This document shows positions 5,079-61,978 of a stretch of DNA of 64,000 bases, one piece after another. A program made the position numbers and the translations under genes. Below the pieces are notes generated by a model. That model worked only from the letters and a program-made list of their open reading frames with translations, did no database searches and was not told the origin of the DNA. Origin of the DNA: Mobula hypostoma (lineage: Eukaryota); contig NC_086109.1 in assembly GCF_963921235.1 (NCBI RefSeq), positions 11,656,001 to 11,720,000 on the forward strand, written 5' to 3'. The first letter of the stretch is position 1. Each line of letters begins with the position of its first letter.

Positions 5079-5190
5079 TCAAATCAAAATGCTGCTGGTA
5101 ATTTTGGATGAATTTCGTGAGCAATCGGTGTTGTTTTTCTGTAGTTCTCTTTTCTTGCTTTGTTGTTCCTTTGCCTTCCCACCAGCCCAT
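5079..5190 (-). CDS. Gene A exon 5, short cytoplasmic tail to stop
   Basis: Strong acceptor ttttctgtttttctag|; phase-2 reading [36 protein letters not shown]; no tyrosine. Confidence 0.65.
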
Positions 5191-8100
5191 CTAGAAAAAC
5201 AGAAAATCAGACTTTAGGGATTGAGAGGTGACGAGAAGCATCGATGTTGATGATATTTCTTTTCAAGATACTCCAGTGATAATTTCTTCATGTAGGCACT
5301 GGCAGGGCCTTGCATGTTTGATGCTGTGAATGTAAGTAGCTATCAAGGTATGCAGTGTAATGGGTCATGGTTGTTGTCTGAGCTGGAGGTTGGATGGAGC
5401 AGTGAAGGACTGTGATTGGTTTGCTGTGGTAATTGTGAGTGACGTCCCATTAGGAGCTTGGGAGGCATGTAGTGAGGTGAGATTATATTGGGTATAAGCT
5501 GTAGTTTGGTTATTATGAGCAGTTTTCGGCCCCTTTTCGAAGGAAGGATGTGCTTGAATCGGAGAGGGTCTGGACGAAGTTCACAAAAATGATCCCAGGA
5601 ATGAAAGGGTCAATGTACGAGGAGCATGTGATGGTTCAGGGCCTTTACTCGCTGGGTTTTAGAAGAATGGGGGCGCAGGGGAATCTCATTGAAAATTATT
5701 GAATATTGAAAGACCTTGATAGAGTGGACGTGGAGACGAAGCTTCCTATAGTGGGGGAGTCCAGGACCAGAAGGATCGGCCTCTGAATAGAAGGAAGTCA
5801 CTCTGGAAAAGAGATGAGGAGAAATTTCTTTAGTCATACGGAGGGTGGTGAATCTGTGTAACTCATTGCCACAGATGGCTGCGGAAGCCAGCTTATTGGG
5901 TATATTTAAAGTGAAGGTTGATAGCTTCCTGGTGAGTATGGGTGTCATATGTTACAGGAAGAAGGTGAGAGAATGGGCTTGAGAGGGATAGTAAATCAGG
6001 CATGATTGAACGATGGAGTAGATGGGCTAAATGCCCTAATTCTTCTCCTATGTTTTGTGGTCTTATGAGTGTACTGCAGACTGGGTAAGGAGACTCTTTG
6101 GTGTATGTGACATGGTTTCTATATTCTTAACTGCTGTGCCTGCTCTGTGACACTGCAAATGTAAACATAAAGTGCAGTGACATTACATCAGAATTAAAAG
6201 CAGTTAACAAACCCTATATTATCCATCAAATACGGTGCCTTTGAACATGAATTTCAACTATTTCAGTATTCAAAATATAGTTATTTTCAAAGTTATGTAT
6301 GCAGGATACAACCCTGAGATTTGTCTTCTCCAGACAGCTGCAAAACGAAGACCATGGATGTAGTTCAAAGAAAAACATCGACACACACAATAAACCCAAA
6401 TTAACTAAACAGCAACAAGAACGTCAAAACCCCTTCAAGATGCCAAAAAAAATCATGCAAAAGGCAACAAAAACTGTAACACGCTGCTCTACGGGCAAAG
6501 AAAGAAAATATTGTGCAAACAGCATCAAGAACATCAACCCCCTGCCCCCCCATGCACAAAAAACCTATCATGCAAATTGGAACAATGACATCAAACCCCA
6601 CACACGCAAAATACAAATCGCGCAACCATTTAACCATTTGTGTTACCACTGCCGTTTCACTCCATGAATAATATTTAATCTGCAGATTATAATCTCTTCT
6701 GTTACATTTTGTTGTAATTTCCCGAGGATATTCACAGAACTCCTGAACTGCTGGACGTGAAGAAATTGGAAACAATATACCTTTGAAAGGCTGTCATGTA
6801 ATGTATCGAAACTGTGCAAAGAATCAAGGCTATGAAGAGTATCCAGCGGGTCACATTCCAAAAATGATGAAATTTTGGCACATCGTTCCTGATGGATGAA
6901 GGAAATATAAGTATTTATACACAGAGACAAATTGCCATTGAGCAATACAACATGGACACAGTCCCATCAGCCCATCTAGTCCATGCTGGCCACTGGGCCC
7001 ATCCAGCTACTCCCTAGTCCTAATTTCCTGTGTTTGGACCATATTCCTCTAAGCCTTCCCCATCCAGTACCTATCCAAGTGCATCCTAAATGATACATGT
7101 ACCTGTCTCAATCATGTCTTGCAGCTCATTCCCTGGATTCACCAACCTCTGTGTGGAAAAAGTTAGCCCATCTTCAAGGTCCCCCAACATTCAGGCCATG
7201 GTCTCAACTTGTTGTTCCCATCAGAAGGTGTTACAGGAACCTCAGGTCCCACACTACCAGGTTCAAGAACAGGTATTACCCCTCAACCATAAGGCTCTTG
7301 TACCAATGGGGATAACTTCACTCACCAACACTGAACTGATCCACAACCTTTGGACTCACTTTTAAGGACCCTACAACTTGTGTTTTTGATATTTATTGTT
7401 ATTATGATTGTAGTTTTAATTTTTCTCACAAGATCACAAGACAAAGGAGCAGAAGTAGGCCATTCGGCCCATCGAGTCTGCTGTGCTACTCTACCATGAG
7501 CTAAACTATTCTCCCATCTAGTTCCAATTTCTGGTTTTTTCCCCATATCCCTTGATACCCTGACTAATTAGATGCCTATCAATCTCCTCCTTAAACACCC
7601 TCAATGATCGGGCCTCCACAGCTGTATGTGGCAACGAATTCCATAAATCCACGACCCTCTGGCTAAAAAAATTTCTCCTCATCTCTGTTTTAAATGGGTA
7701 CCCTCTAATTCTAAGACTGTGGCCTTTTGTCCTGGACTCATGCACTAAGGCAAATGGCCTTTCCACATCTACTCTGTCCAACCCTTTCAACATTCGAAAT
7801 GTTTCTATGAGATCCCCTCTCATTTTTCTATACTCTAATGAATACAGTCCAAGAACCGACAAACGCTCCTCATATGTTAGCCCCTGCATTCCAGGAATCA
7901 TTCTCGTAAATCTTCTCTGAACTCTCTCCAACATCTGTACATCCCTTCCAAGACAGGGGCCCAAAACTGCACACAGTATTCCAAATGAGGTCTCACTGGT
8001 TCCCCATAGAGCCTCATCAACACCTCCTTACACTTATACACTATTCCTCTTGAAATGAATGCCAATATAGCATTTGCTTTCCTTACTGCTGATCCAACCT

Positions 8101-11100
8101 GGTGGTTAACCTTTAGGGTATCCTGCATGAGGACCCCCAGGTCCCTTCGCACTTCCAATTTTTGAATTTTCTCCCCATCTAAATAATCTGCCCAATTATT
8201 TCTTCTTCTAAAATGTACAACTGTACATTTCTCAACATCGTTTCTCATCTGCTATTTCTTTGTCTACTCTCCTAAACTGACCAGGTCTCTCTGCAACCTT
8301 TCCGTTTCTTCAACATTTCCTGCTCCTCCACCTATCTTGGTGTAATCCGGAAATTTAGCCACAAAACCATTTAATCCATAAACTAAACCATCGATATACA
8401 TTGTAAAAGAAGCGGCCCCAACACTGACCCCTGTGGAACACCACTAGTAATCGGCAACCAATCAGAATAGGATCCCTTTATTCCCACCCTTTGCTTTCTG
8501 CCTATCAGCCAATTCTCCACCCATTCCAATATCTTTCCTGTAATTCCATGGGCTCTCACCTTATTAAACAGCCTCTTATGCGGCACCTTATCGAAGGCCT
8601 TTTGAAAATCTAAATACACAACATCCACAGCCTCTCCCTTGTATATCTTATTTGAGATTACCTCAAAAAATTCCAATAGGTTGGTGAGGCAGGATCTTCC
8701 CTTCATGAAACCATTCTGGCTTGGGCCTATCTTGTCATACACCTCGAGGTATTTTATAACCTCGTCCCTGAGGATCGACTCCAATAACTTTCCAACTACT
8801 AATGTCAGACTAATAAGTCTATAATTTTCTTTTTGCTGCCTCCCTCCTTTCTTAAACAGCGGAACTACATTTGCGACCTTCCAGTCCTCCGGAACCATGC
8901 CAGTGTCTATTGATTCCTAGAAGATCATTTCTAATGCCTCCACAATCTCCAAAGCCACCTCCTTCAGAACCTGTGAGTGCACCTCATCCGGTCCGGGAGA
9001 CTTATCTATTCTTAGTTCATTTAGCTTCTCAAGCACTTTCTCTCGAGTAAACTTGACTGTGCCTAATTCTATTCCCTGAGACCTCTGGCTATCAGGTATG
9101 TTGCTAATGTCTTTCACTGTGAATACTGATGCAAAATACTCATTTAGTTCCTCTGCCATCTCTTTGTTTCCCATTATAATATCTCCAGCATCATTTTCAA
9201 TCGGTCCCATATCTACTCGTGTCACTCTTTTACTCTTCATATATTTAAAAAAACTCTTAGTATCCTTTTTTATGTTAATTGCCAACTTCCTTTCATAATT
9301 CATCTTTTCTTTCCTAATGACTTTCTTAGTTTCCTTCTGTAAGTTTTTAAAAGTCATCCAGTCCTCAGTTTTCCGACTAATTTTTGTTTCCTTGTACGCC
9401 GTCTCTTTTGCTTTTATTTTAGCCATAACCTCTCTTGTTAGCCACATTTGTGCCAGTTTTCCATTCATGATTTTCTTTTTTCTTGGAATATATTTTTCCT
9501 GCACTTTCCTTATTTTTTGTAGGAACTTCATCCAATTCTGCTCTACCATCCCTCCATCTAACTTACTTTTCCAATTGACTTTGGCCAGTTCCTCTCTCGT
9601 ACCACTGTAATTTGCTTTGTTCCACTGAAATATCGATACACCTGATACCAGCTTCTCCTTTTCAAATTTGAAACTGAACTCAATCATATTATGATCACTA
9701 CTCCCAAGGGGTTCTATTACCTCCAGCTCCCTAATCACCTCAGGTTCATTACACAGCACCCAATCCCAAACAGTCGGTCCCCTGGTGGGCTTCTGGACAA
9801 GCTGCTCCAAAAAGCCATCCCATAGGCATTCTACAAACTCCCTCTCCTGAGATCCAGTACCTTCCTGACTTTCCCAATCCACTTTCATATTAAAATCCCC
9901 CATAATTATCTTGACATTTTCCTTCTGACACGCTTTTTCTATTTCCAGCTGTAACTTGTCGTCCACATCCCGGCTGCTGTTTGGACGTCTGTATATAACT
10001 GCTATTAGTGTCTTTTTACCCTTGCCATTTCTTAACACGCCCATAAGGATTCTACCTCTTCTGATCCTATGTCCCTTCTTTCTCGTGTTTTGATATCGTT
10101 GCTTACCATCAGGGCCACTCCACCCCCTTTGCCTACCTTCCTATCTTTCCTATACACTGTGCATCCTTGGGCATTCAGCTCCCAATCATATCCATCATTC
10201 AGCCATGACTCGGTGATGGCCTCAGTGCCATATCTTTTAACCTGTAGCTGTACAACAAGGTCATCCACTTTATTTCTAATGCTGCGTGCATTCAAGTACA
10301 GTACATTTAGATCACTATCTATTACCAATTTTGCTATATTTCTATCACACAGCAAATTATCCTGTCTAATCACCTGCCTTTCCTTCTTGCCATCTTTGCT
10401 GCATAGTATTTTTGACTTCTTTCTATTTTCCTCTTCCTCGACCCTAACACCCTGGTTTCCTTCCCCCAGCCAACTTAATTTAAACCCTCCCTAGCAGCTA
10501 TATTAAACAATCCCGCCAGGATATTAGTACCCTTCGAGTTCAGGTGTAACCCATCGTTTTTGTATAAGTCATACCTCCCCCAAAATAGATCCCAATGATC
10601 CAAGAATTTGAAGCCCTGCCCCCTGCACCAGTTACTTAGCCACACATTCATCTGCTTAATTCTGCTATTCTTACCTTCATTAGCACGTGGCTCAGGCAGT
10701 AATCCTGAGAATATTACCCTGGAGGTCCGGCTTTTCAATTTTCTTCCTAGCTCCCAGTAATCTTCCTTCCGGACCACCTCTCTTTTTCTGCCTATGTCAT
10801 TGATACCAACATGTATCAAGACCTCTGGCTGCTCGCCCTCTATCCTCTGAATACTCTGGGCCCGATCTGAGACATCCTGTACCCTGGCACTAGGGAGACA
10901 ACATATCATCTGGGTATCCTTGTCCAGCTCGCAGAATTTCTTGTCTGTTCCCCTCACTATGGAATCCCCTATACATACTGCATTTCTCCTTGCTCTCTTG
11001 ATCACGGCACTGGGCAGAGTGCCAGAGTTCTGTTCGCTGTGGTTTTCCTCTGTCAAGTCAATCTCTCCAACAGTATCTAAAACGATATATCGATTTCTGA

Positions 11101-14100
11101 GGCGGACTGTCACAGAGGTGCTGTCCACTGTCTCTCTGTAGGTATTATCAATCACCTCCTCACTTTCCCTAATTAGCTGAAGGTCATCAAGTTGCAGCTC
11201 CAGATCCCCAACACGGTCCTTAAGGAGCCTCATCTCAATGCACCTGGTGCAGATGTAATCCTTGGGGAGGCTGGGAGTATCCCAGGGTCCCCACAGCTGG
11301 CACTCCAAGCACAACACCTCAATCTGGTAAAACCTGTGGTAAAACCACAGGCATGCAGCCTCATTTCTCAATTACTAGGAATTTTGGGATGATTCCTTTG
11401 TTTACTTTTGTGGCTTTTTGAAGATTTACATAAATATAGCTGTGTTACCTTAATTGTTTAATGCTATTGTATAATGACCAGGGAAGATACCGGTTGTAGA
11501 TATTATTATTGGGAGGATCTATACACTGTACGTGTTCCATAGTCTTTCAATTTCCTCTTTTAATTCAGCATATTTCAGATGTTTTTCACTTACTAATTTC
11601 GGTGTGTTATTTGTGTTTGGAATGGCTATATCTATTAAGTAAGTTGTTCTTGCTTGTTTACCCTGTATTATTATATCCAGACAATTATTATGGATTGTCC
11701 TATCTGTGATAACAGATCAGTTGTAATATATTTTGTGGGACTCTAAAACTGGATCAAATTTGTATTTAAAGTAAGGTTTATTTATAGGCATCCATTAGTC
11801 TCATGAGACCATGGATTTGAGCCTTGGAAGGTTTCCAGGGCGCAGGCCTGGGCAAGGTTATATGGAAGACTGGCAGTTGCCCATGCTACATGTCTGCCCT
11901 CTCCACGCCACCGATGTTGTCCAAGGGAAGGGCACTAGGGCCGATACAGCTTGGCGTTGGTGTCGTCGCAGAGCAATGTGCCTTGCTCAAGGACACAACA
12001 CGCTGCCTCAGCTGAGGCTCGAACTAGTGACTTTTAGATCACTAGACTGACGCCTTAACTACTTGCCCATGCGCCCACTATAGTAAGGTGTAGTTTCTTT
12101 TATGAGTTTGTACTTTAAAGCAGGATTTTGGTGAATGATGTTTGCCTCCTGATTGTGCCTGTGTAAGTAATCAGATGGAGATAAATTGCTGCAGGATCTT
12201 GTAATATGTTGGATTGTTTCTGGTTTCTCTTGGCATTTTCTGCATTTATCGTCTTCAATTTATTGGTTTTATATTTAGTATATTTGAACATTTTTTGTTG
12301 ACCACCTGATCCTGTATTATAACAAGGAACCCTTCTGCTTTTGGGAAGAGGTCTCCAACTCTAAGCCAGTCATTCGACATTTCCTTGTCATCTAGTATGC
12401 TCACATTGTAGGGCTGTCTTGCAGGGAGGGCATCTTTTCTTCTGTACTGATAATTTCTTTATTTTTCTGGGTTGTGCTTTTATTTAAGTTTAGTGGTGTA
12501 TACTTCTTACCAGAATTGCGTATGCTTGCATGGAGTGCTGAATCCTGTTCTCTTTGACTAGAAATGTATACTGGGAAGTTTTATCTAACAGTTGTGCAAA
12601 TGTTTTACGTCTGTTATTCTTCTTCTTCCTTCTGTCCAAGGAACATAGTGTTTTCTAAAACTTGTCATTTCAGTTCTTACTTTTCCTTATAAATTTTCTG
12701 GATTTTGGACCAAAATATTATGCCAAACGAATACATTAATATGGGTAAAGTTAAAGTTATTATTGCCTTTGTTATATTTCTACTGTTGAGCTCTATTTGG
12801 CAGATTTTCTTAAGTCTTGAAGTAAATTCAATTGAAATTTTTCCTCTTATTGATTGATTTTCTTTGCTTGTTGATATCCCAGATAGTAATATGTTTCATA
12901 TTCCTCCATCAGTTTTATTGTATTCTTATGCTCTGATTTCCATTTTGTTATTGCTGATGAAGGAGGATATAATTTCAATTCGTCCACATGTGGAAGAAGT
13001 GTCGAGGTATAATTCATTTGGTTATTTCTGATGAGATACTGAATTTTCATCCGATTTGGTAAATTGGAGAGTGGGGTTAAAGCTAGACAAAACTACAGTG
13101 GGTTTAGAGTCACCCTGGTAGTTGCCTCGGTTTATTTTGATTTTTGGTTGTAAATGGAAGGGTGATTATAATACGCCAGCGCTTCATCAGATGTTTCATA
13201 TGTATTGGGTGTAGTTTATATATATTTTAGGAACTGCTATTAATCATGAATGTGGAACTGAATCAAATGCTTTTTGGTAGTCAACATAACAATAAGAAAT
13301 ATTTCTGCTTTTCCATCAAGCCTGATTTAGAATTACAGAATCTATTATCAGTTGTTCTTTACATCTTTTCATCCCATTATGGCATTCTTTCTGATCTTCT
13401 GTAAGTATATTGTGGTTATCTACTGTAAGTGAGTGGTGATTAATTGCGAGGTACACAATGTTACAATTTTATATATAGTTTGTAAACAATTAATAGGACG
13501 ATATTTTGATGAATCTTTTGTGATATCTCCTTTCGGAAAGAGGTATGTTTTATCTTCTGTCAAAAATTCAGGCCCCTTTTCAGGATTTTTAAGAAAATTG
13601 TTGATCTATATCAATATTATTGTGTTTAATTCTTCACAAGGAAAACTCGAAGCATTTGGCATTTTAATATTGCTGAGAGTATTGAATCTATGCCCTGTGC
13701 CACTCGGCTGTTTTTTGAGAAACCTTTCACCACAACCTACTACTTTCAAACTCAGGCCAGTCTGAATGATCTAAATAATCTCCCATGGATTCGATGGGAC
13801 CTAACCTTCCAGACTAGCCTACCATCTGGGATCTTTTCAAAGGCCTTGTTAAAGTCTAAATAGACATGACCCACTACCTTAACCTCATCCATCTGTTTCA
13901 AAATTCAAAAAACTCTGAATAATTTATCAAGCAGTTTCCATGCACAGAGCCATGCTAACTCTTTTAATCAGGTTGTGTCTATCCAAATGTTGATAGATCC
14001 CGTCCCACAGAATTCCCTTCAGTAACCCCTCTATTTCAGGAAGACCAGCTTTGTATTGCTATATTTTTTGAGAAATGGAACAACCACCTATCTTTGGGAA

Positions 14101-17100
14101 CCTCCACAATGGTAATGACAAAGCAAATATTTCTGCAAGGGTCTCCACAATTTCTCCTCTGCTGTCCGCAAAATCTAAGAAAGCATTTGGTTAGACTCTG
14201 GGCATTTATCCACCCAAATGTGCTGAATGGCTGCAAGTACTTCCGCCCTGATAATATGAATATCCTCCACTTGGTTCCCTTATCCCCTGAGCATAATTGA
14301 CTTTCTCCTCAGTAAACACCAAGGAGAAATAACCATTAAACGTCCCACCCATCTCCTGTGTCCCAAGACATCGTCTTACCCTACTGATCTCTAAGGGGAG
14401 TAGCTCTCCTTAGTTACTCTTTTGTACTTCATATAGATTTAGAAACTCTTGGGATTTTCTTTAACCTTACCTGCTCGGTCCATCTCATACACTCTCTTTG
14501 CCCTCTTAAGAATTCTTAATTTTTTTATAGTTATCATCGATTCACACAATTCCCAGCCTCCTTCCCCAATATATTCTTTCTTCTTTTTCTTGCCAGAGCC
14601 TGTAGGTCCCTCATTAGCCAAGCTACTCTCGGCCTGTCATGTTTATCCTTAACTCTAACAGGAACATCCTACTCCTGGACATGTGATATCACACTCTTGA
14701 AAGCTCCTGCTTGCTATTTGTTCCTTTCCTTCAAAAAAGTTCACCCAATCAACTTTTGTTAAACCTTGCCTAATTCCTCCCAAATGAGCTCTATTCTAGA
14801 TTAACAGCCTAACCTGTCCTATCCTTTTCCATCGTTACCATAAAACAAACACATTTAAGTCCTTCTTACCTGTTTCCATTCTCGGTCAAAGGAGTAGAAC
14901 TGGTTGCAGTGGCTGTCTTTCTCACCTCTGTGAATAAAGTGGATGAAATATCTTATCAGTGAATGTCTAAAAGCCAGTTCTCTCCCACTCCAGAGCTTTG
15001 AACAAGTTGTTTGAGAAAACTAAAAAATTGTTTGACCACATTCTGTTTAAGCCTTCCATCTCCATCCTAACTATACCTATGCAAGTATTTTTTAGATACT
15101 GCTATTGTACCAACTGAATATTTCGATTTGATGAATACAAATGGATCCCCTCAGGTGGTGTTAAACTTGAACTTGATGCGTGAATAATATTAGATGCTGA
15201 AAGAAGCCTAAACCTTCTGGGATACTGGGTATTATCAGACAGAATATCGCAGGTGAAATTTCAAGGGCCTCTTAATAAACATTTCAATAATATAGTACAA
15301 ACGTTTGTACATGCACCAGCAGATGCTAGTAGTGAAGAAGATATAGAAAGTTATTTATGATACCTTGCAAGAAGCAAAGGACCACTGCAAATCACAAAAT
15401 ATCCTTATGATGATAGCGGATATGAATACCAAAGTTAGACAACAATGAAATGGTGATATTGTCAGCACTTTTGGGAACCAGGAATGACAGAGATGAGAGA
15501 TTTTATAGACCTGTGGGCCTGAAGATAGATAAATCCCCTGGTCCTGATGGAATGCATCTCAGGGTACTGAAAGAAATGGCAGAGGTTATAGTAGAGGCTT
15601 TGGTGATAATTTATCAAAATTCTCTGGACTCTGGGCAGGTCCTGGCAGATTGGAAGATGGTGAATGTCACACCGCTGCTCAAAAAAGGATGTAGGCAAAA
15701 AGCAGGTAACTATAGGCCAGTTAGTTTAACATCTGTAGTTGGGAAAATGCTTAAAGCTATCACTAAAGAAGAAATAACGAGACATCTGGAAAGAAATGAA
15801 TCCATCAGGTAGATGTAGCATGGGTTCAGCAAAGGCAGGTCCTGTTTGACAAACTTACTGAGTCCTTTGAGGATATAACAAGTGCAGTGGATAGAGAGAA
15901 ACAGTGGGACATTATTTACTTGGATTTCCAGAAGGCATTCGATAAGGTGCTGCATAAAAGACTATCATTAGATATGAATGCACTGAGTTGAGGGTGATGT
16001 ATTAGCATGGATAGAGGATTGGTTAACTAATAGAAAGCAGAGAGTTGGGATATATGTGTATTACTCTGCTTGGCAATTAGTGATGAGTGGTGTGGTGCAG
16101 GGGTTGGTGCTGACCCCCCTGGTGCTGACCCAAATGTTCATGATATACATTAATAATCTGGAAGAAGGGACCGAGTGTAGTGTATCTAAGTTTGCCGATG
16201 ACACTAAATTGAGTGGAAAACCAAATTATGCAGAAGATATGGAGAGTCTGCAGAGAGATATGGATAGGTTAAGTGAGTGGGCAAGGGTCTGGCAGATGGA
16301 GTACAATGTTGGTAAATGCAAGGCCATCCACTTTGGAAGGAAAAATGGAAGATCAGATTATTTAAATGGTAAAAAATTGTAGCATGCTATTGTGCAGAGG
16401 GAATTGGAAGTGCTTGTGCATGGATCACAAAATGTTGGTTTCCAAGTGCAGCAGGCTATCAAAAAAGGCAAATGGAATGTTGGCCTTCATTGCTAGAGGA
16501 GGGTTGAAGTTAAGAGCAGGGAGTTTATGTTGCAACTGTACAGGGTGCTGGTGAGGCTGCACCTGGAGTACTGTGTGCAGTTCTGGTCTTCTTACTTGGA
16601 GGCGGTGCAGTGGAAGTTCACCTGGTTGATTCCAGAGATGAAGGGGTTAGACAATGAAAAGAGATTGAGTCACCTGGAACTGTACTCACTGGAAATCAGA
16701 AGAATGAGGGGAAATCTTAAGGAAACATATAAAATTATGAAAGGGATAGATGAGATAGAGGCAAGAAAGTTGTTTCCACTGGTAGGTGAGACTAGAACTA
16801 GGAGACACAGCCTCAAGATTTTGGGGAGTAGATTTAGGACAAAGATGAGGAGGAACTGCTTTTCCCAGGGAGTGGTGAATCTGTGGAATTCTCTGCCCAA
16901 TGAAGCAGTAGAGGCTACCTCAGTAAATATATTTAAGACAAGGTTGGATAGATTTTTGCATAGCAGGGGAATTAAGGGTTATGGGGAAAAGGCAGATAGG
17001 TGGTGATCAGTCCATGGCCAGATCAGCCATGATCTTACTGAATGGCAGAGCAGGCTCGACGGGCCAGATAGCCGACTCCTGCTCCTGTTTATTATGTTCT

Positions 17101-34470: not shown

Positions 34471-35170
34471 CACTTTACACAAAAGATGGTACGTTGATGG
34501 AACTAGAAGAGCCATTTTCTCATTGCTTCAGTGACCCAAGTTCAATCCTAATCTCCAGAGCATCTGCAGATTCTGCATATTCTTCATAGCATTTTGTGGG
34601 TATCCTTCCATACCTCAAACAAGTGCTGGCTGATAGGTTAATTGTCTGCAGTAAGTTACCTCTAGTGTGAGTGGGTGGTGGAATTTGGAACATGGGAGAA
34701 TAAATTCCAGGTAAAAATAGTGAGGAATCGGGACTGTTGTGTGAGCCAGCACAGATTCATTAACATACACAAATTGTTGGAGGAACTCAGCAGGTCAGGC
34801 AGTATCTATGGCAAGGAATAAACAGTTGGCATTTCAAGCTGAGACCTTTCATCAGGACTGGACAGAAGGGGAGGAATTGTTAAAATTTAAACAGATTTGT
34901 TAAAATTCATTGTGCTAGCCACTATGTGGCACAGTAGCATAATGGTTAGCACAATGTATTCCAGTTCCTGAGATCTGGGTTCACTTCCCGGCACTGCCTA
35001 AATTGGGGGATTGCTGGGCGGCATGGCTTGAAGGGTCAAAAGGGCCTATTCCACACTGTATCTCAATAAATATGTAAATAAAGTGAAATGGCCTACTTCT
35101 GTGGGATAAGGAAATGTGGAAATGTAGTCATTTCTTCAAAAACGAAAGTCAAAGGATGGTTCATGGAAGG

Positions 35171-35371
35171 CTAGAGGGACATCTGCAAGAAACTGGGTTT
35201 TCGTATTTCCATGCAGCACTGAGGAACAGCCTGGACTGGATTAGGGTGAGGAACTATAGGTCTGATGGCCAACTCACTCCCTGAATTTTTCATCACCACC
35301 ACAGCTTCTTCCATGAGTTGCTGGGCTTCTTGGGGACCTAGAAATGTACATAGTCCTTCCTCCTTCTTATC
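35171..35371 (-). CDS. Gene B terminal cytoplasmic exon (probable)
   Basis: Acceptor tcttctatttcttcag|; phase 0 reads DKKEEGLCTFLGPQEAQQLMEEAVVVMKNSGSELAIRPIVPHPNPVQAVPQCCMEIRKPSFLQMSL* (3' part of ORF 35171..35476). Confidence 0.55.
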   Translation of the reverse strand, partial: DKKEEGLCTFLGPQEAQQLMEEAVVVMKNSGSELAIRPIVPHPNPVQAVPQCCMEIRKPSFLQMSL

Positions 35372-50300: not shown

Positions 50301-53300
50301 ACTGTTTCTTTTCCCATAAATATTCCCTGACCCGATGAGTTTTTCCGTCATTTTGGATTTTTATTATAAGTTGCTAACATCTTCAGTTCTATGAATTTTC
50401 AGTTGTAAGTGCAAGTGTAGTTAGGCTTTGCTCAGTGTGGAGAGCAATGGAAGGGACTGCAGGGTGCAGGAGATCCATTTAGCTGCTCCACCATTGCTTG
50501 GTAATGCATAGCACAACCAGACAAGTTGGTCCCATAAGACCAAAATCCAAGATTATAAGCAGACAGGTACACAGGAATTTACAGAATGTGCATGATGAGT
50601 GTTCTACAATAATTCTACAACATGGATCAGACTTACAGTTTTTTTGGATATGTTTGATAGAAATATATATCCAGTGTCCCTTTAATCAAATTGGATCCCA
50701 CCCACCCTGCGTATAGACTGTTTGTCCCACTCCCATCAGGGAGGAGACTATGCAGCATCCACACCAGGACCACCAGACTCAAGACAGTTACTTCCTTCAA
50801 CCTGTCAGGCTGATCAACACCTCCCAGCTAATAATACATCCCACCACCACTACCTACACATCACCTTGCATCACTTTATGTACGTACAATCAGTCTATGT
50901 AGTTAACAGTTACTCGCACATTGTGCTTTATAGGATTCCTTTTAGATTTAGGTGCGCAGTAGTGTAGTGGTCAGCGCGACGCTATTACAGCTCGGGGCGT
51001 TATAGTTCAGAGTTCAACTCCAACGTCATCTGTAAGGAGTCTGTGTGTCCTCTCCGTGGGATGTGTGGGTTTTCTCCAAGTCGTCCGGTTTTGTCCCACA
51101 GTCCAAAGACATACCGGGTAGGTTAATTGGTTATTGTAAATAGTCCCAGGATTAGGTTAGGATTAAATCAAGGCTCGAAGGGCCAGAAGAGCCTATTCCA
51201 TGCTGTATCTCTAAGTAAATAAAAATATATAAATATTTCTACTTATTGTGTTTTTGTTCTTTATGCTGATTGTTTTTTTTTAGATGCTGCATCACTTCCG
51301 GAATAACAATGATTTTGTTCTCCTTTGCACTCGTGTACTGAAGAATGAGAGTACGCCATCTTGAATCTTGAGTCTGGAGCTTTAAGCCAGGAGTTTCCTT
51401 CGTGTTGCTTTTTTGTATGATTCAAGTATTATTGTATCATCGAGAGGGGGAGAGAGAGAGGGAGGGGGGGGGAGATAGAGAGAGAGAGAGGAACTCTGGC
51501 AGAATTCCAGGCTTTCCTCTTGAGCTCACCCATTGAAAACAGGAAGTTTGTTCTTTAATTTGTAATTGAAATGTTGAAGTTGTTCAACTTACCCACTGCT
51601 GAATATTTTCTATATCTTATGATGAAAACAGCAGCGATAATCACAATTCCAAACATGATTCCCAGAGAGACTGATAAATTTGTGGTACTATAGGAGAGAA
51701 AATTGCAGAGTTTATTTCTCCAAAGCTTATTTTTGTACTCTAAATAATATTGTGATGGTATTGGATTCCCTGTCTGCAAAGCTTTAAACTCAAAAGAGTA
51801 TTTTAAGCCCTATCTGATATAGATACCTACTGGTACCCTCACTATAGCGAGGGTATACTGTATTCACCTACTCTACAGTGACTAACTTGCTTCTCTATCC
51901 AGTATGCATGGAAAGGTCCAGCTGCCAACACACACTGCTTGAGTGGTTTGTCCTGCTTTCTATCAAGGAAAAGATACTTCTAGCTAACAAATAAACACAG
52001 ATATTTTATTTTTAACAATATATGTTTATAGATTCATAGAATAGTACAGCACAGTACAGGCCCTTCGGCCCACAATGTTGTGCCGACCCTCAAACCCTGC
52101 CTCCCATATAAGCCCCCACCTTAAATTCCTCCATATACCTGTCTAGTAGTCTCTTAAACTTCACTAGTGTATCTGCCTCCACCACTGACTCAGGCAGTGC
52201 ATTCCACGCACCAACGCACCCTGAGTAAAATACCTTCCTCTAATATCCCCCTTGAACTTCCCACCCCTTACCTTAAAGCCGTGTCCTCTTGTATTGAGCA
52301 GTGGTGCCCTGGGGAAGAGGCACTGGCTATCCACTCTATCTATTCCTCTTATTATCTTGTACACCTCTATCATGTCTCCTCTCATCCTCCTTCTCTCCAA
52401 AGAGTAAAGCCCTAGCTCCCTTAATCTCTGATCATAATGCATACTTTCTAAACCAGGCAGCATCCTGGTATGTCTTCTCTGTACCCTTTCCAATGCTTCC
52501 ACATCCTTCCTATAGTGAGGTGACCAGAACTGGACACAATACTCCAAGTGTGGCCTAACCAGAGTTTTATAGAGCTGCATCATTACATTGTGACTCTTAA
52601 ACTCTATCCCTCGACTTATGAAAGCTAACACCCCATAAGCTTTCTTAATTACCCTATCCATCTGTGAGGCAACTTTCAGGGATCTGTGGACATGTACCCC
52701 GAGATCCCTCTGCTCCTCCATACTACCAAGTATCCTGCCATTTACTTTGTACTCTGCCTTGGAGTTTGTCCTTCCAAAGTGTACCACCTCACACTTCTCC
52801 AGGTTGAACTCCATCTGCCACTTCTCAGCCCACTTCTGCATCCTATCAATGTCTGTCTGCAATCTTTGACAATCCTCTACACTATCTACAACACCACCAA
52901 CCTTTGTGTCGTCTGCAAACTTGCCAACCCACCCTTCTACCCCCACATCCAGGTCGTTAATAAAAATCACGAAAAGTAGAAGTCCCAGAACAGATCCTTG
53001 TGGGACATCACTAGTCACAATCCTCCAATCTGAATGTACTCCCTCCACCACCACCCTCTGCCTTCTGCAGGCAAGCCAATTCTGAATCCACCTGGCCAAA
53101 CTTCCCTGGATCCCATGCCTTCTAACTTTCTGAATAAGCCTACCGTGTGGAACCTTGTCAAATGCCTTACTAAAATCCATATAGATCACATCCACTGCAC
53201 TACCCTCATCTATATGCCTGGTCACCTCCTCAAAGAACTCTGTCAGGCTTGTTAGACATGATCTGCCCTTCACAAAGCCATGCTGACTGTCCCTGATCAA

Positions 53301-56300
53301 ACCATGATTCTCTGAATGCCTATAGATCCTATCTCTAAGAATCTTTTCCAACAGCTTTCCCACCACAGATGTAAGGCTCACTGGTCTATAATTACTCGGA
53401 CTATCCCTACTACATTTTTTGAAGAAGGGAACAACATTCGCCTCTCTCCAATCCTCCGGTACCATTCCCGTGGACAACGAGGACATAAAGATCCTAGCCA
53501 GAGGCTCAGCAATCTCTTCTCTCGCCTCGTGGAGCAGCCTGGGGAATATTCCGTCAGGCCCCGGGGACTTATCTGTCCTAATGTATTTTAACAACTCCAA
53601 CACCTCCTCTCCCTTAATAGCAGCTTGCCCCAGAACATCAACCTCACTCATATTGTCCTCACTATCATCAAGTTCCCTCTCATTGGTGAATACCGAAGAG
53701 AAGTATTCATTGAGGACCTCGCTCACTTCCACAGCCTCCAGGCACATCTTCCCACCTTTATCTCTAATCGGTCCTACCTTCACTCCTGTCATCCTTTCTT
53801 TCTTCACATAATTGAAGAATGCCTTGGGTTTTTCCTTTACCCTACTCGCCAAGGCCTTCTCATGCCCCCTTCTTGCTCTTCTCAGCCCCTTCTGAAGCTC
53901 CTTTCTTGCTTCCCTATATTCCTCAATAGACCCAGCTGATCCTTGCTTCCTAAACCTCATGTATGCTGCCTTCTTCCTCCTGACTAGATTTTCCACCTCA
54001 CTTGTCACCCATGGTTCCTTCACCCTACCATTCTTTATCTTCCTCACCGGGACAAATTTATCCCTAACATCCTGCAAGAGATCTCTAAGCATCGACCACA
54101 TGTCCATAGTACAATTCCCTGCAAAAACATCATCCCAATTCACACCCGCAAGTTCTAGCCTTATAGCCTCATAATTTGCCTTTCCCCAATTAAAAATTTT
54201 CCTGTCCTCTTTGATTCTATCCTTTTCCATGATAATGCTAAAGGCCAGGGAGCGGTGGTCACTGTCCCCCAGATGCTCACCCACTGAGAGATCTGTGACC
54301 TGACCCAATTCATTACCTAGTACTAGATCTAGTATGGCATTCCCCCTGGTCGGCCTGTCCACATACTGTGATAGGAATCCATCCTGGACACACTTAACAA
54401 ACTCTGCCCCATCTAAACCCTTGGAACTAATCAGGTGCCAATCAATATTAGGGAAGTTAAAGTCACCCATGATAACAACCCTGTTATTTTTGTACCTTTC
54501 CAAAATCTGCCTCCCAATCTGCTCCTATGTATCTCTGCTGCTACCAGGGGGCCTATAGAATACCCCCAGTTTAAATTCAGACAAATAGTTTTCATAGAAA
54601 TTTAACACTCATAGGGAATTTCCAATTTATAAAAGATTTCCAAATTACAAACTACAAAGGATTTCCTAAAACAAGTGCACGGTTATATGGTTTTAAGTGC
54701 AATTATTACAAACTAGAAGAACATACCAATGAGTTATTGCGAACAACTCTGATCTTTTGGAAAGGTCATGCAGCTGTGCTAGAAAGCTGAATTTAGCACT
54801 AAAACATCTCAGGCCCTGGAAAGCGAATATCCATGACAATATAGTCTTGATTCTTACTTTTCTTCAATAATATAACATCCACTATGAAAGATTCCCACCA
54901 TCAAAGTCAAAGTAAATTTGTTATCAAAGTATCCTACATATATGTCACACATAGTACATTGAGACTCATTTTCACCATCTGACCCATGCTAACCTTTCAC
55001 AGCTGCTATCAGGCAGCACATACAGACTTTCCACACCAGCAGGTTTAAGAACAGCTACTTTCCTTCAACTGTTTGGTTCTTGAACTAACCCGAACAATCT
55101 TAAGCACTACAATTCAGCAGTAGTATGAACACTTTGATAAAACTGTGCACTAAAATGAAGATTTTTCTTCTAATTGTGCTCTTGGAAAATAGTGTACAGT
55201 TTATGGGTGTTTTGTATGCTCATATGATGCGATGTGCCCGTAAAGTTGTCACAAATAAGTTTTTCATTGCACCTGTGCGTACATGTACTTGTCCAAAGTC
55301 AAAGCTTGACTTTGACTTTAACTTTCTCAGTTTTATCCTCACAGTTCTACTGCTAAAACTACTGATGTTTACAGGGTGCAGAACCCAGAATCCAACTGTT
55401 TACCCAACACTGTCTGCACCCACAAACCGTGATAGTGACAGTTAACTGGCTGTTCTCCATTCTACCATTACCTTTGACTTGGCGGTTGAACTGTTCCCTG
55501 AACTTCATAGGGCAGTGTAGGTGAAGGTGTTGTCAGAGCTGGAAAAACAATAACAATGTAAGTATTTCACAGACTATATAACTTTATATTCAGTAGAAGC
55601 GTAATGCATAAACACTAGAAAGTCTGCAGATGCTGGAAATCCAAAGCAACGCACACAAAATGCCGGAGGAACTCAGCAGGTCAGGCAGCATCTATTAGTA
55701 GATGTTTCAGGCCAAGACCCTTATTCAGGACTGAGAAGGAACGAAAAGATGCTAGAATAAAAAGGTGTGGGGAGGGGAAGGAGGCTAGTTTGCAGGGCTA
55801 AGTGCTGGCAGGATTAGTGGGGAGGGATGAATAGACAGGTGAATTGTGGAGGGAGCAATCCCTACAAAAAGCAGACTGGCGGGGAGGTAGAGATATGTTT
55901 AATGGTAGGATCCCTCTGCAGATGCTGGATATTGTGGAGGATAATGTGCTGGATGTGCAGGCTGATACATAACGCATTTAATGATAAAATTTTGTCTTTA
56001 TAAATTTGATTTTATATTCTTCTAGACGAAACTCACATAAAGTTTATTGTGTTTGGGTTGATTGGGTTTATATTCCTCCTTTGACAAAGTGAGACCTACC
56101 ATAGTGTCAGGTCCAATCGGTAGAGATTGGACAAACTGTTGGAGTGTAGTGACATGGTGAACATTTTACTCAACTATTGATCCAGTCTTTATTCAACTAT
56201 TAATTCATTCAAGCTATTATTAGTTTGGTTAATGAACCGCAGGCACCAATACCAGTAACACAATAGCAACCGAGGAATTTAATAAATCTGGCTAAAATGC

Positions 56301-59300: not shown

Positions 59301-61978
59301 GCTGGTGAACGCAGCAGGCCAGGCAGCATCTCTAGGAAGAGGTACAGTTGACGTTTCGGGCCGAGATCCTTCCAAAGGGTCCTGACGAAGGGTCTCGGCC
59401 TAAAACGTCGACTGTACCTCTTCCTAGAGATGCTGCCTGGCCTGCTGCATTCACCAGCAACTTTTATGTGTGTTGCTTGAAATTCCAGCATCTGCAGATT
59501 TCCTCGTGTTTGCATGACTATGGTAACATTGCCCTTTTGACATGCATTTTCTATCTCTTGTTGTAATTTGTAGACTACTACTGTTCAGAGGTCTGTTTAT
59601 AACTCCTATCAGGGTCTTTCTACCCTTGCATTTTCTTAGCTCTACCCACAACGATTCTACACCTTCTGATCCCATGTCACCTCTTTTTAATGATTTGATT
59701 TTACTTATTACCAATAGAGCCTCCCCACCCCCTTGCCCTACCTGCTTGTCCTTTTGATCTCCCGTCTGAATGTTCCCTGCTATTCATAGAGTCATTGTGT
59801 TTTAGAAAGTTACTTTGTGGAATCAAGTCTTTTAGGACCACAGAGTCCACGGCAACTATCAAACACCTAATTGCACTATTCCTTCCCATCTTCTGATCAG
59901 CTGTGTCCTCCCTCACCCCATTGCCTCACCTGTTACTCACCTGCCAAATAAATACAGTGGCCAATTAATCTACAAAACCTGTACACCTTTGGGATATTAG
60001 AAGACTAAGGAAACCCACATAGTTGTAGGAAAAATGTGCAAACTCCACAGAGACAAGATGGAAGTCAGGTCATTGGAGCAACAAGGCAGCAGCTTTGCTA
60101 ACTGTTCCAATGTGCTCTTACAATTAATGTAGTGAGATAGTCCCAACCATTATACGTGAATTCACACATCAGATTAGTAAAATTGAGAACAATGCAATCT
60201 TTCTACATTTGTCCTTTAACATGACAGTAGTACATTTAAATGAACTATAATTTGTTCATTCATTATGTGCCATATCGTATGATTGTTCTTGGCAAATTTT
60301 TTGTACATAAGTTGTTTGCCTTTGCCTTTGTCTGGGCAGCGTCCTTACAAGATGGGTGATCCCAGCCAATATCAATAGTCTTTAGAGTTTGACTGCCTGG
60401 GCATCAGTGGTTGCATTACCAGGACTTGTGATAGGTACCTGCTGCTTGTATGACCATCCACCACCTGCTACCATGGCTTCATGTGATCCTCATCTGGGGG
60501 CTAAGCAGATACTACACCTTGCGCAAGGGTGAGCTGTAGGCTAGCAGAGGGAAGGAGTGCTTTCTACCTCTTTTGGTAGAGACTTTTCTCCATGTCTCCA
60601 CCCAAGAGCTGTTATTACTTATTTTAAAGAAGCTCCTGTGCAGAAGGCATATATCCAGCTCTACTTCTCAGAATTCCTCCCTTCCTTTTACATGCTGGCT
60701 AAAAAAAATCCTTGAAGTTTCTTCCAAAAACATTGAATTTTAACTCAAAATAGGTATCTAAATTTGCAGCAACACACATAAAAGCTGCTGGTGAACGCAG
60801 CAGGCCAGGCAGCATCTATAGGAAGAAGTACAGTCGACGTTTCGGCCCGAGACCCTTCGTCAGGACTAACTGAAAGAAGATCTCCCCCTCCCCCTCCCAC
60901 TTTCAAATCTCTTACTAGCTCTTCTTTCGGTTAGTCCTGACGAAGGGTGTCGGTCCAAAATGTCGACCATACCTCTTCCTATAGATGCTGCCTGGCCTTC
61001 TGCGTTCACCAGCAACTTTTATGTATGTTGCTTGAAATTCCAGCATCTGCAGATTTCCTCATGTTTGCGTATCTAAATTTGCAATTGTTTAGAAAAATGG
61101 CAGTAAGCCAGCAAAGTATTGCTTATTTATAACCATTTAATCAATCCCTTCTCTAAATTAGAGTGCTGCCCTATTGTTAGGGTGTATTCTGGAATGATGC
61201 AATATAGCAAATATTAATTTCATTAGCAACCAGACTTCAGATCTGAATGTGGACTGTAGATTGAATTTAAAATGCAGTTGAGAACAATGGTCTTCCTGGA
61301 GATACAGACTGAGGTTAATTGCAAACCAGGAAACACCCATTCACCTGAGATGAATGCATATGCCTAAATATAGCGCAGAATGACACTCATTTTGGGCATG
61401 TTGTTGTGAAGATCTAGGTATCTGAAACTGTGTACAACTCAAAGGAAGCATTATGAATGCATTGTCACCAGAGAAATTCTGCTGTTGTTACCTTTGTTCT
61501 TTAACATGTAAAATATGATCTAATGTTGGTTCAAGAGGCCTCTTCCAAGAATGTCTCCTGTATAATGCCTGCTTGTTTTGCTCAATAAAAACTTCTATGT
61601 CCACGAGCTTCAATGTGACTCCGGAGACTTCATTCACAGTCACAACGCTCATCTTACCTTCTGTAATATTCAAGTGTAACTCAGCCATTTTGTCAAAACC
61701 GAAGCTTGTAATACCACACCAGTAATGCCCTGTGTCCCTGATTGTTAGTTGGGTCATGGTAATGAAAAGTTCTGCAGTGGTTTGGTTGTCCATAATTGTG
61801 ATTCTTTTGTCTGTGCCATCCTGCTGGTTGTTTGAACGGGCAATAACACTGCACGATCTCCAGCTGGACCCCTTGCACAAGTACTTTGCGTAGTTTTTGT
61901 AATAGGCATGATACTGGCATCTTATGGTGACCGTTTCTCCTACCGTTCCAAATACTTGCTTTGGCCCGGTTATACCAG
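35171..61978 (-). CDS. Gene B: CD300/CMRF35-like single Ig-V type I receptor, 5'-partial model (leader exon not found in window)
   Basis: Exons 61978-61658, 55538-55472, 51687-51593, 35882-35827 and 35371-35171. All are GT-AG with phases 1,2,1,0. Order is V domain, Pro/Thr stalk, uncharged TM, long tail. The two tail exons lie ~15.7 kb from the TM exon and are less certain. Confidence 0.7.
35827..35882 (-). CDS. Gene B cytoplasmic exon (probable)
   Basis: Acceptor catgcttag| and consensus donor GGG|gtaagt; reads (G)EKGFRYIGEETNSVTTSG, phase 1 to 0, bridging the TM exon and the terminal exon. Confidence 0.6.
35953..36491 (+). mobile_element. Non-autonomous Tc1/mariner element with a truncated transposase N-terminus
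   Basis: TA on both sides; imperfect TIRs (cacccagtggccattttattag / ctaataaaatgaacaccaaatgtg). It encodes MGKKCDLSDFDCEMIVGARQGGLGISETADLLGFS... (paired-like DNA-binding domain). Confidence 0.85.
37025..37170 (+). repeat. DeuSINE (SacSINE1-like) 5' fragment
   Basis: B-box gggttcgaatcccac followed by tgagcacaaagatcttgcctgacaattcagtg. A Deu-domain-like fragment also occurs at ~30005-30065. Confidence 0.5.
38431..38725 (+). mobile_element. V-SINE (HE1-like)
   Basis: tRNA-like head, V-core ggtttcttccaggtggtccagtttcctccca..tccaaagac and CR1-like tail. Related copies lie at ~24600-24800(-), ~31060-31240(-), ~34480-34700(+), ~34920-35085(+), ~37960-38200(-) and ~59830-60110(-). Confidence 0.8.
38789..39309. 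mobile_element. Tigger/pogo-type MITE
   Basis: TA TSDs at 38787-38788 and 39310-39311; imperfect TIRs ctggtcccccgctttacg and ...gggggaacctg. Confidence 0.75.
39926..40490 (-). mobile_element. Rex1/Babar-like LINE 3' end with a (TCTAA)n tail
   Basis: ORF 40126..40323 (KKASHPNHGLFTLLPSNRRYRSLRSHTSRHRKSFFP); tail atagattagattagattagattagatt on the plus strand. Confidence 0.8.
40820..41310 (+). mobile_element. Degenerate CR1 3' fragments
   Basis: ORF 40965..41315 ([18 protein letters not shown]...RGHAFKV). Confidence 0.7.
41878..42600 (-). mobile_element. CR1 3' fragment, little diverged
   Basis: ORF 42023..42550 (RPHVEYCVQCWSP...RGHSLRIRG); tail ggcctactcctgcacctattgtctattg. Confidence 0.9.
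42660..49660 (-). mobile_element. Rex1/Babar-like LINE split by the L1 insertion (42660-43893 and 48635-49660)
   Basis: EN relics (LPSILLTNAHS..., TRGPNIPDHCYT) at 48900-49600 and RT relics (MMNCFERLV, FINYSSAFNTI) at 42836-43724. The sequence is continuous across the TSD (...gagatttga|aatttgctgagggc). Confidence 0.8.
43894..48634 (-). mobile_element. L1-clade LINE, 4741 bp, 5' end present, ORF1 mostly deleted, ORF2 near intact
   Basis: 9-bp TSD tcaaatctc at 43885-43893 and 48635-48643. 5' end cgggacttccggtagtgctcatggag; AATAAA plus an A-rich tail at the 3' end. ORF2 = EN (47401..48030) + linker (47202..47444) + RT/Cys domain (44252..47233; GTRQGCPLSP, YADD, CDRC-x8-H-x4-C). Confidence 0.95.
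50950..51235 (+). mobile_element. V-SINE (HE1-like)
   Basis: A-box gtagtgtagtggtcagcgc, B-box-like gagttcaactcc, V-core gggttttctccaagtcgtccggttttgtcccacagtccaaagac. Confidence 0.8.
51593..51687 (-). CDS. Gene B transmembrane exon (uncharged)
   Basis: Acceptor ttttctctcctatag| and donor GTGG|gtaagt; reads TTNLSVSLGIMFGIVIIAAVFIIRYRKYSAV, phase 2 to 1. It lies inside ORF 51555..51779. Confidence 0.85.
52030..54570 (-). mobile_element. Young 5'-truncated CR1 LINE with a 779-aa open ORF2 segment
   Basis: ORF 52164..54503 (end of EN, RT with YMDFSKAFD, VPQGS and FADD). It nearly matches 1-1470 and lies in the stalk-TM intron of gene B. Confidence 0.95.
55472..55538 (-). CDS. Gene B stalk exon
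   Basis: Acceptor gtttttccag| and donor CAAAG|gtaatg; reads (A)LTTPSPTLPYEVQGTVQPPSQ(S), phase 1 to 2. Confidence 0.75.
55605..55790 (-). mobile_element. Penelope pLTR fragment
   Basis: ctgcagatgctggaaatccaaagcaacgcacacaaaatgccggaggaactcagcaggtcaggcagcatc... Similar pieces lie at ~32450-32530 and ~34760-34865. Confidence 0.65.
57403..59760 (-). mobile_element. Degenerate CR1 LINE (EN-RT relics with deletions)
   Basis: ORFs 59451..59714, 58536..58766 (VCLDFQKAFNKV) and 57688..58170; tail ctgctcctatgtcttatggtct. Confidence 0.85.
59286..59513. mobile_element. Penelope-derived hairpin (inverted pLTR) element, 228 bp, 15-bp TSD
   Basis: TSD atgactatggtaaca at 59271-59285 and 59514-59528. It has ~88-nt inverted arms and a mutated hammerhead core at 59379-59412, and it interrupts a CR1. 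Confidence 0.85.
60769..61068. mobile_element. Penelope-derived hairpin (inverted pLTR) element, 300 bp, 15-bp TSD
   Basis: TSD gtatctaaatttgca at 60754-60768 and 61069-61083. It has ~110-nt inverted arms around a ~40-nt spacer, and belongs to the same family as 59286-59513. Confidence 0.85.
60833..60866 (-). ncRNA. Minimal type I hammerhead ribozyme motif (Penelope-type)
   Basis: The minus strand reads GUC CUGACGA A GGGUCUCGGGCC GAAA C GUC GAC: stem I GUC/GAC, intact CUGANGA and GAAA, minimal palindromic stem III, GUC cleavage triplet. One stem II pair deviates from GGG/CCC. Activity is not shown. Confidence 0.6.
61658..61978 (-). CDS. Gene B Ig V exon
   Basis: Lies inside ORF 61488..62216. 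Acceptor cttgcag|, donor GAAG|gtaaga. Reads GITGPKQVFGTVGETVTIRCQYHAYYKNYAKYLCKGSSWRSCSVIARS...DTGHYWCGITSFGFDKMAELHLNITE. Confidence 0.93.

Follow-up and report, generated by a model that had tools for sequence, protein, structure and literature searches.

Two adjacent CD300/pIgR-like receptor genes with different membrane designs in the devil ray Mobula hypostoma

The analysis of a 64,000-nt stretch of Mobula hypostoma contig NC_086109.1 (the window) revealed two single-V-domain genes, A and B, on the minus strand. As a whole, the data are very probably best explained by two adjacent and separately transcribed genes for elasmobranch type I membrane receptors of the modular domain immune-type receptor (MDIR) / CD300-pIgR-like type. 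Gene A encodes an arginine-bearing transmembrane (TM) segment, gene B encodes an uncharged one and lacks an ITIM, and their V domains are deeply divergent. The two genes are accordingly presented here as a piece of a large receptor cluster, and not as a matched pair, since their V domains are distant and TM-Arg and three-ITIM proteins already occur together in the clade of gene A itself.

Window layout and identity of the V domains

The gene models were derived from the sequence, by homology combined with splice sites and phases. Pfam and tblastn searches identified only two V-set exons in the window, at 21868-21545 (gene A, Pfam E 6.6e-12) and 61978-61658 (gene B, E 7.4e-13), both on the minus strand, with gene B located upstream of gene A. 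In both genes the V-set domain is carried by a single exon of phase 1-1, 324 nt long in gene A and 321 nt in gene B. The earlier note had described two same-strand genes with one V domain each, which agrees with this layout; the spacing of ~1.1 kb that it had given was wrong. The gap, measured to the gene A ATG at 23686, is 10.0 kb from the gene B end backed by the orthologue (33731) or 11.5 kb from that of the alternative form (35171). At the level of the sequence, each of the eight previously predicted junctions could be assembled from canonical AG/GT sites whose phases agree. Both genes are spread across long introns filled with LINEs. Their exons are unique in the window, and thus not transposon-derived. 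A search of the window for more family exons (ITIM tails, neutral TM exons of the P0009 type and further V exons) returned none.

Comparison with solved structures (PDB, phmmer) placed both V domains closest to pIgR and CD300f/CLM-1, followed by CD300a/c, NKp44 and TREM. The E values ranged from 1e-19 to 1e-36 for pIgR/CD300f, compared with 1e-7 for TREM and 1e-5 or weaker for antibody and TCR V domains, so that the nearest family was CD300/pIgR and not TREM, antigen-receptor V or butyrophilin. For gene A, the fold points in the same direction: the AF2 model of its V domain (pLDDT 93) is predicted to match CD300lf best, with a TM-score of 0.90 and 35% identity, and the best 30 Foldseek matches, obtained for gene A only, were CD300lf, CD300f, pIgR, CD300a and CD300c. 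The previous assignment to the CD300/pIgR type is therefore borne out by phmmer for both genes and by the fold for gene A. The extra cysteine pair reported before was also recovered by alignment, as W-C-x7-C in gene A and L-C-x7-C in gene B. This pair (C-C') aligns with that of most relatives, and the canonical B-F cysteines are invariant. A polymeric Ig receptor proper has an ectodomain of 2-5 V domains for binding and transporting polymeric Ig, and each gene described here has one V exon.

Gene A and its arginine transmembrane module

Gene A spans 23686-5079 on the minus strand, and its model of ~232 aa comprises a leader, the V exon, a short stalk, a TM exon and a tail. Exon 1 (23686-23590) contains the ATG and the signal peptide, 32 codons plus 1 nt, and ends in a phase 1 donor. 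It matched the leaders of the relatives P0004, P0005, P0007 and P0085 with 45-60% identity (tblastn), and the ATG at 23686 and the donor G/gtaaat were both read directly from the sequence. Exon 2 (21868-21545) encodes the V-set domain identified by Pfam and by fold, with the canonical cysteine pair and the additional C-x7-C, and is 80% identical to the V domains of M. birostris pIgR-like proteins. Direct splicing from this exon to the TM exon was rejected: the only good acceptor is out of frame and leads to a stop after 12 codons, so that a further exon, of length 3n+1, must lie in between. As the stalks of homologues gave no convincing tblastn match in 6888-21545, this exon was sought by a splice and phase scan. 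The resulting candidate exon 3 (14927-14870, 58 nt, minus strand) would encode a Thr/Ser-rich stalk and lead from phase 1 to phase 2. Only eight AG...GT candidates in the interval from the V exon to the TM exon were open and compatible in phase, and this one ranked best; it aligned weakly with the final stalk segment of relatives from Hemitrygon, Leucoraja and Narcine, and had no repeat copy within the window. An ORF resembling a stalk (5454-5370, E 0.8 to that of P0006) lies 3' of the TM exon, has no usable donor and was attributed to chance.

The TM segment is encoded by exon 4 (6888-6781, minus strand), delimited by tblastn and splice sites, which matched P0006 with 60% identity (E 1.6e-8), as well as P0007, P0010 and P0103. 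The arginine of the charged TM segment claimed earlier lies in this exon, within a W-x3-R-W-x-x-F module that is invariant in nine ray and shark proteins (from Hemitrygon, Leucoraja, Narcine, Mobula, Scyliorhinus and Hemiscyllium), all of which have short, motif-free tails. The candidate exon 5 (5190-5079, minus strand), selected by phase fit and an acceptor (ttttctag/A), would add a Lys/Glu/Gln-rich tail that starts with R-W, as in Narcine P0155, and ends at a stop. It yields exactly the tyrosine-free tail of 37 aa described in the earlier note, but is one candidate among several compatible acceptors with similar scores, and its phase and acceptor weakly suggest that it is the true 3' end. 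The tail would not exceed 68 aa with any of the listed alternative terminal exons.

The uncertainty at this end, together with other properties of the locus, could also be read as the sign of a decaying or incomplete copy, either a pseudogene or a gene with a 3' end other than the modelled one, with only gene B being functional. No exact or near-identical orthologue of gene A was found in protein databases, where the best V match reached 80-81%; the stalk and tail exons have no strong homology support; the introns of 6.6 and 8 kb are packed with LINEs; and the direct V-to-TM splice is out of frame. However, the exons for the leader, the V domain and the TM segment all read open and are bordered by canonical splice sites, every invariant family residue is kept, the frame is restored by a single exon that scores well and has the required phase, and the TM exon agrees in phase with that of Hemitrygon P0006. 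We consider decay or mis-modelling of gene A unlikely, and an intact receptor gene is the reading preferred here.

As such, gene A would have the build of an activating-type receptor: a CD300-type V domain, a short stalk of the O-glycan type, an arginine near the outer end of the TM segment and a short tail free of motifs. The combination of a charged TM segment and a short tail, one of the hallmarks of paired receptors, is present in the gene A model. By analogy to the TM-charged activating receptors, such as mammalian CD300b/c/d/e, Fc-alpha-RI, OSCAR and LILRA, the partner of the arginine within the membrane would be the aspartate of an ITAM adaptor (a relative of FcR-gamma, DAP12 or CD3-zeta), and once the V domain had bound a ligand, Syk-type signalling would follow in a leukocyte presumed to express the gene. 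The TM arginine is the single feature that suggests this adaptor coupling. One survey from 2014 did not find the FcR-gamma chain in shark data (PMC4016189), and our literature search on ITAM adaptors in elasmobranchs returned nothing beyond that survey.

Gene B and its cytoplasmic tail

The exons of gene B, all on the minus strand, were mapped mainly against CMRF35-like molecule 5 of M. birostris (P0002). The V exon (61978-61658), identified by Pfam and by its M. birostris match, is 97% identical to the V domain of that protein. A leader exon was sought in 61979-64000 (tblastn, E 50, word size 2), with no match, and is placed outside the window. Downstream of the V exon, a Pro/Thr-rich stalk exon of 67 nt (55538-55472) corresponds to P0002 residues 134-155 (91% identity), and the TM exon (51687-51593) corresponds to residues 154-189 (92%, E 2e-14). 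The latter encodes a TM segment without charge, in agreement with the neutral TM proposed previously, followed by R-Y-R-K-Y. Cytoplasmic exon 1 (35882-35827) matched P0001, P0002 and P0003 with 67-88% identity and carries the box G-E-K-G-F-R-Y-I-G-E-E, which is kept in Mobula, Pristis and Hemitrygon. In its longer form, the membrane-proximal box conserved in rays reads K-Y-S-A-V-G-E-K-G-F-R-Y-I-G/E-E-E. The terminal exon (33856-33731) is rich in Ser, Thr and acidic residues, contains one tyrosine and a stop, and corresponds to P0002 residues 207-246 (93%, E 2e-19; all four P0002 alignments by tblastn); an AATAAA lies ~500 nt downstream of it. An alternative terminal exon (35371-35171), with a good acceptor and 66 open codons, matched the C-terminus of the Hemitrygon isoform X2 (P0001 residues 313-329, 82%, tblastn). 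The exon order of gene B is that of P0002, and the spliced model is 95.9% identical to this protein across 220 aa. As judged by this match, gene B is the orthologue of M. birostris CMRF35-like molecule 5.

The tail of ~90 aa attributed to gene B in the earlier note holds for the form with the alternative exon (93 aa), but the tail is 68 aa long in the form that agrees with the M. birostris protein. No ITIM or ITSM ([SIVL]xYxx[ILV], TxYxx[VI]) was detected in either tail form or in the three orthologues, and no ITAM was found in the gene B tail. Gene B, previously called only "non-activating", lacks an ITIM and is therefore not an inhibitory partner. It most likely would bind a ligand other than that of gene A; as to its function, our best guess is that it either signals via a non-canonical tyrosine or serves as a non-signalling binding or uptake receptor. 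A bolder and rather doubtful proposal is that the elasmobranch-wide module of gene A may use an adaptor not yet known from cartilaginous fish, conceivable because FcR-gamma was reported missing from shark data, and that the gene B box, together with its two alternative terminal exons, may represent a novel cassette for signalling or trafficking.

Relationship of the two genes and comparison with known families

The V domains of genes A and B are 34-36% identical, in line with the strong divergence noted before, and their V exons show no similarity at the DNA level. In a tree of 487 V domains, gene A fell into a clade (support 0.999) in which TM-Arg proteins and three-ITIM proteins are intermixed and which includes the Leucoraja (skate) relative P0010, whereas gene B was placed with P0001-P0003 in a separate clade (support 0.999). 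The common ancestor of the two clades spans 365 of the 487 V domains. The C-termini of about 160 relatives show three recurrent designs: a charged TM with a short tail, a neutral TM with ITIMs and a neutral TM without an ITIM.

These results bear on the idea of a genuine paired-receptor system made up of A and B, in which both would bind a common ligand, with A activating and B dampening or competing, as in CD300A/CD300C or KIR2DL/2DS. The genes are adjacent, lie on the same strand and belong to the same family, and the activating/non-activating pair proposed earlier is retained with regard to the opposite membrane designs, TM-Arg with a short tail and neutral TM with a longer, tyrosine-containing tail. 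The closely similar ectodomains of paired receptors are not seen, however, given the low V-domain identity and the two strongly supported clades, and the ITIM or ITSM typical of the other partner is absent from gene B. Moreover, matched TM-Arg and ITIM proteins with intermingled V domains already exist in the gene A clade (e.g., Hemitrygon P0006 and P0009); judging from their V domains, the TM-Arg and three-ITIM proteins of this clade are the true pairs. A paired system of A and B is thus regarded as highly improbable, and membership in a large receptor cluster is preferred.

The suggestion that this might be an uncharacterised cluster in a cartilaginous fish was not upheld, as MDIRs are known from the clearnose skate and close relatives from Mobula, Hemitrygon, Pristis and sharks are already named in RefSeq. 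According to the outline given in PMC3031540 (citing Cannon et al. 2006, PMID 16738934), MDIRs were first described in the clearnose skate in 2006 as a multigene activating/inhibitory family resembling CD300, TREM and pIgR. By that description, the skate MDIRs resemble the present genes in being a multigene type I family of cartilaginous fish with CD300/TREM/pIgR-like V domains that each occupy one exon and vary in number, and with activating (charged TM) and inhibitory (ITIM) members. Gene B, which combines a neutral TM with an ITIM-free tail, represents a third design, and the genes described here are from a devil ray, not a skate. Among the RefSeq models of Mobula and Hemitrygon, the pIgR-like proteins P0004, P0006, P0007 and P0009 have the leader, the V domain (72-81%) and the TM-Arg exon in common with gene A. 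P0004 and P0006 have three V domains, in contrast to one in gene A, and P0007 is a chimeric model in which two genes are fused through transposon sequence. The pIgR-like names of these relatives are automatic, and none of them is a true pIgR.

Mammalian CD300 molecules (CD300f/CLM-1, CD300a and CD300c; PDB 1zox, 2nms, 2q87 and 9z0m) likewise contain one V domain, which has a second disulfide, and are encoded by clustered genes, in which charged-TM activating members are mixed with tail-signalling members. The identity to them is only ~30-35%, which precludes one-to-one orthology. Their activating members mostly carry Lys or Glu in the middle of the membrane, whereas gene A has an Arg near the outer end, in W-x3-R-W, and CD300a and CD300f carry ITIMs, in contrast to gene B.

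Genes A and B are new members of an already described family, and the current picture is unchanged, given that CD300-like activating/inhibitory families have been known in cartilaginous fish since 2006. Two members of a large cluster of innate receptors in the devil ray now have clean exon maps, which help to annotate transposon-swollen loci with truncated or chimeric public gene models. The analysis also identifies the arginine TM module as an old cassette, sharply conserved across sharks and rays, and is useful for finding the ligands and adaptors with which activating receptors work in the oldest jawed vertebrates.

Exon organization of the two receptor genes

A tblastn search of the whole window identified only two V-set exons, both on the minus strand, belonging to gene A (21868-21545, 324 nt, Pfam V-set E-value 6.6e-12) and gene B (61978-61658, 321 nt, E-value 7.4e-13). 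Both exons were in phase 1-1, the usual arrangement of Ig-superfamily domain exons, and were flanked by a polypyrimidine-AG acceptor and a G/gta donor. No second copies of either gene's exons were present within the window. LINE fragments were abundant in this vertebrate DNA, where reverse-transcriptase (RT) and endonuclease domains were found.

An exhaustive, profile-free search with the gene A V domain matched elasmobranch "pIgR-like" and "CMRF35-like" proteins. Mapping these relatives onto the window located a minus-strand leader exon (23686-23590, with an ATG and a phase 1 donor) and a minus-strand transmembrane (TM) exon (6888-6781, 60% identity to the C-terminus of the Hemitrygon pIgR-like model P0006, E-value 1.6e-8). 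A direct join of the V and TM exons was rejected because the former ends in phase 1 and the latter begins in phase 2, so that the frame would close after 12 codons. The 14.7 kb separating the two exons was scanned for open AG...GT exons of the needed phase, and the clear best of eight candidates was a Thr/Ser-rich exon of 58 nt (14927-14870, minus strand), which aligned with the final stalk segment of the relatives. The terminal exon proposed in the earlier note (5190-5079, minus strand) was in phase after the TM exon and encoded a 37-aa, Lys/Glu/Gln-rich tail without Tyr, starting with R-W as in a Narcine relative; it is weakly supported, since several other downstream acceptors scored similarly by a crude measure. 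The modelled protein comprised 232 aa. With every alternative terminal exon the tail remained at most 68 residues, so the charged-TM, short-tail design is independent of this choice, and no ITIM occurred in the highest-scoring alternative (acceptor 5802), the one checked. An ORF behind a good acceptor (5370-5454, minus strand), downstream of the TM exon and lacking a usable donor, showed weak similarity to the first segment of the stalk in relatives from Hemitrygon and Mobula (E-value 0.8); it is either a chance match or the remains of a stalk exon since lost.

The gene B V domain matched Mobula birostris CMRF35-like molecule 5 (P0002) at 97%, with further relatives from Hemitrygon akajei and Pristis pectinata. 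Mapping P0002 onto the window by tblastn placed the remaining minus-strand exons in order: stalk (55538-55472), uncharged TM (51687-51593), first cytoplasmic (35882-35827) and terminal with stop (33856-33731). All splice sites were canonical and the phases compatible, and the spliced product shared 95.9% identity with P0002 across 220 aa; the signal-peptide exon was not found within the window. A possible second terminal exon (35371-35171, minus strand) matched the C-terminus of Hemitrygon isoform X2. The tail of about 90 aa claimed earlier agrees with the form using this exon (93 aa) and not with the orthologue-supported form (68 aa). At 35321-35371 (minus strand) in this alternative exon, the Tyr of Hemitrygon G-L-Y-V-F-L was replaced by Cys (G-L-C-T-F-L), and the frame continued about 50 codons beyond the Hemitrygon stop. 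The genes were separated by 10.0 kb (33731 to 23686), or by 11.5 kb with gene B ending at 35171, not by the previously reported 1.1 kb or so.

Several LINEs were observed, all on the minus strand. A near-complete L1-type element (44252-48084), markedly AT-rich (GC 0.32), lay in the 15.7-kb intron of gene B in the orientation of the gene, with a 227-aa endonuclease ORF followed by a 993-aa RT/zf-RVT ORF. Between the gene B stalk and TM exons, a different LINE family was represented by an endonuclease-RT ORF of 779 aa (52164-54503), and a broken copy at the start of the window (1-2613) was apparently of the same family (ORFs 210-485 and 53316-53591 matched closely). The gene A stalk-to-TM intron held a LINE (8383-11371) whose 298-aa ORF1, of the GDSL-esterase/OSK type, preceded fragments of endonuclease and RT. 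At loci of this kind, the public gene models of relatives are not reliable. In P0007 (M. hypostoma XP_062922428.1), a TM-Arg gene with one V domain is joined to a second gene of V-stalk-TM structure over 70 kb, through reverse-transcriptase-like sequence, and P0004 (M. birostris) ends within its third V domain.

Family assignment and membrane designs

The best solved-structure matches of both V domains by sequence were pIgR and CD300f/CLM-1 (single-domain E-values 5e-19 and 1.6e-20), followed by CD300a/c, NKp44, TREM and FCMR, with antibody and TCR V domains far weaker. The AlphaFold model of the gene A V domain, built from a 20-sequence alignment (pLDDT 93), had mouse CD300lf as its top fold match (TM 0.90, 35% identity); next came human CD300f, pIgR D1, CD300a and CD300c. 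The CD300-like assignment made earlier was thus borne out, and no grouping with antigen-receptor V or butyrophilin appeared. The canonical Cys pair was invariant in the V-domain alignment, and the extra C-x7-C pair was present in both genes. One or both of the extra cysteines were lost in Leucoraja P0010, Narcine P0005, Pristis P0085 and Scyliorhinus P0103, so that not every member of this elasmobranch family has the second disulfide.

The two membrane designs that had been proposed were also recovered, with a charged TM and short tail in gene A and an uncharged TM in gene B. The gene A TM exon carries its Arg within W-x3-R-W-[ILV]-[ILVF]-F, a module shared by nine proteins, of which some come from rays (Hemitrygon, Leucoraja, Narcine, Mobula hypostoma) and others from sharks (Scyliorhinus, Hemiscyllium); in the non-chimeric models it precedes a short tail, about 0-34 residues long and lacking tyrosine motifs. 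In mammalian Fc-alpha-RI, OSCAR, LILRA, NKp46 and CD300b/c/d/e, a basic TM residue pairs with an aspartate in the ITAM adaptor, and FcR-gamma users typically have Arg near the outer leaflet. By analogy, the gene A Arg would pair with such an aspartate. FcR-gamma went undetected in a 2014 survey of the shark data of the time (PMC4016189); this is weak negative evidence because the survey also missed pIgR-like genes, which clearly exist.

Neither form of the gene B tail contained an ITIM, ITSM or ITAM. A juxtamembrane box, K-Y-S-A-V-G-E-K-G-F-R-Y-I-(G/E)-E-E-(T/S)-N-S, was kept in Mobula, Hemitrygon and Pristis, whose three proteins were the only matches in a search with the stalk-TM-tail module; this conservation suggests a specific partner. 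Gene B is a member of another sublineage than gene A, with an unclassified tail.

Relationship of the genes and place in the family

Among about 160 relatives, three C-terminal designs recurred: a charged TM followed by a short tail, and a neutral TM either combined with ITIMs or lacking them. A maximum-likelihood tree was computed for 487 V domains taken from the relatives. In it, gene A fell within a ray clade (support 0.999) mixing TM-Arg proteins (P0006, P0010) with three-ITIM proteins (P0009, P0085), and inside this clade the V domains of P0006 interleaved with those of P0009, both from Hemitrygon. Gene B fell in a separate clade with P0001-P0003 (P0002 and its relatives; support 0.999), and the common ancestor of the two genes covered 365 of the 487 tips. 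Paired receptors are defined by near-identical ectodomains with opposite signalling. Judged by sequence, this combination appears within the gene A lineage and not between genes A and B, whose V domains are 34% identical, and their earlier reading as an activating/non-activating pair is not upheld. Gene A is therefore regarded as a member of the activating type, and any inhibitory counterpart of it would lie elsewhere in the cluster.

Gene B had a RefSeq orthologue in the sister species (96% identical). Gene A, for which no exact annotated counterpart was found, is an ordinary member of a clade with many sequences. The suggestion that the cluster was possibly uncharacterised in cartilaginous fish gives way to published work: PMC3031540, citing Cannon et al. 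2006 (PMID 16738934), describes the MDIRs of clearnose skate and of zebrafish as multigene families with activating and inhibitory members, similar to CD300, TREM/TLT and pIgR. Both genes are thus real and CD300-like, and they differ in membrane design; they do not form a matched pair, and they belong to a family already known in cartilaginous fish.
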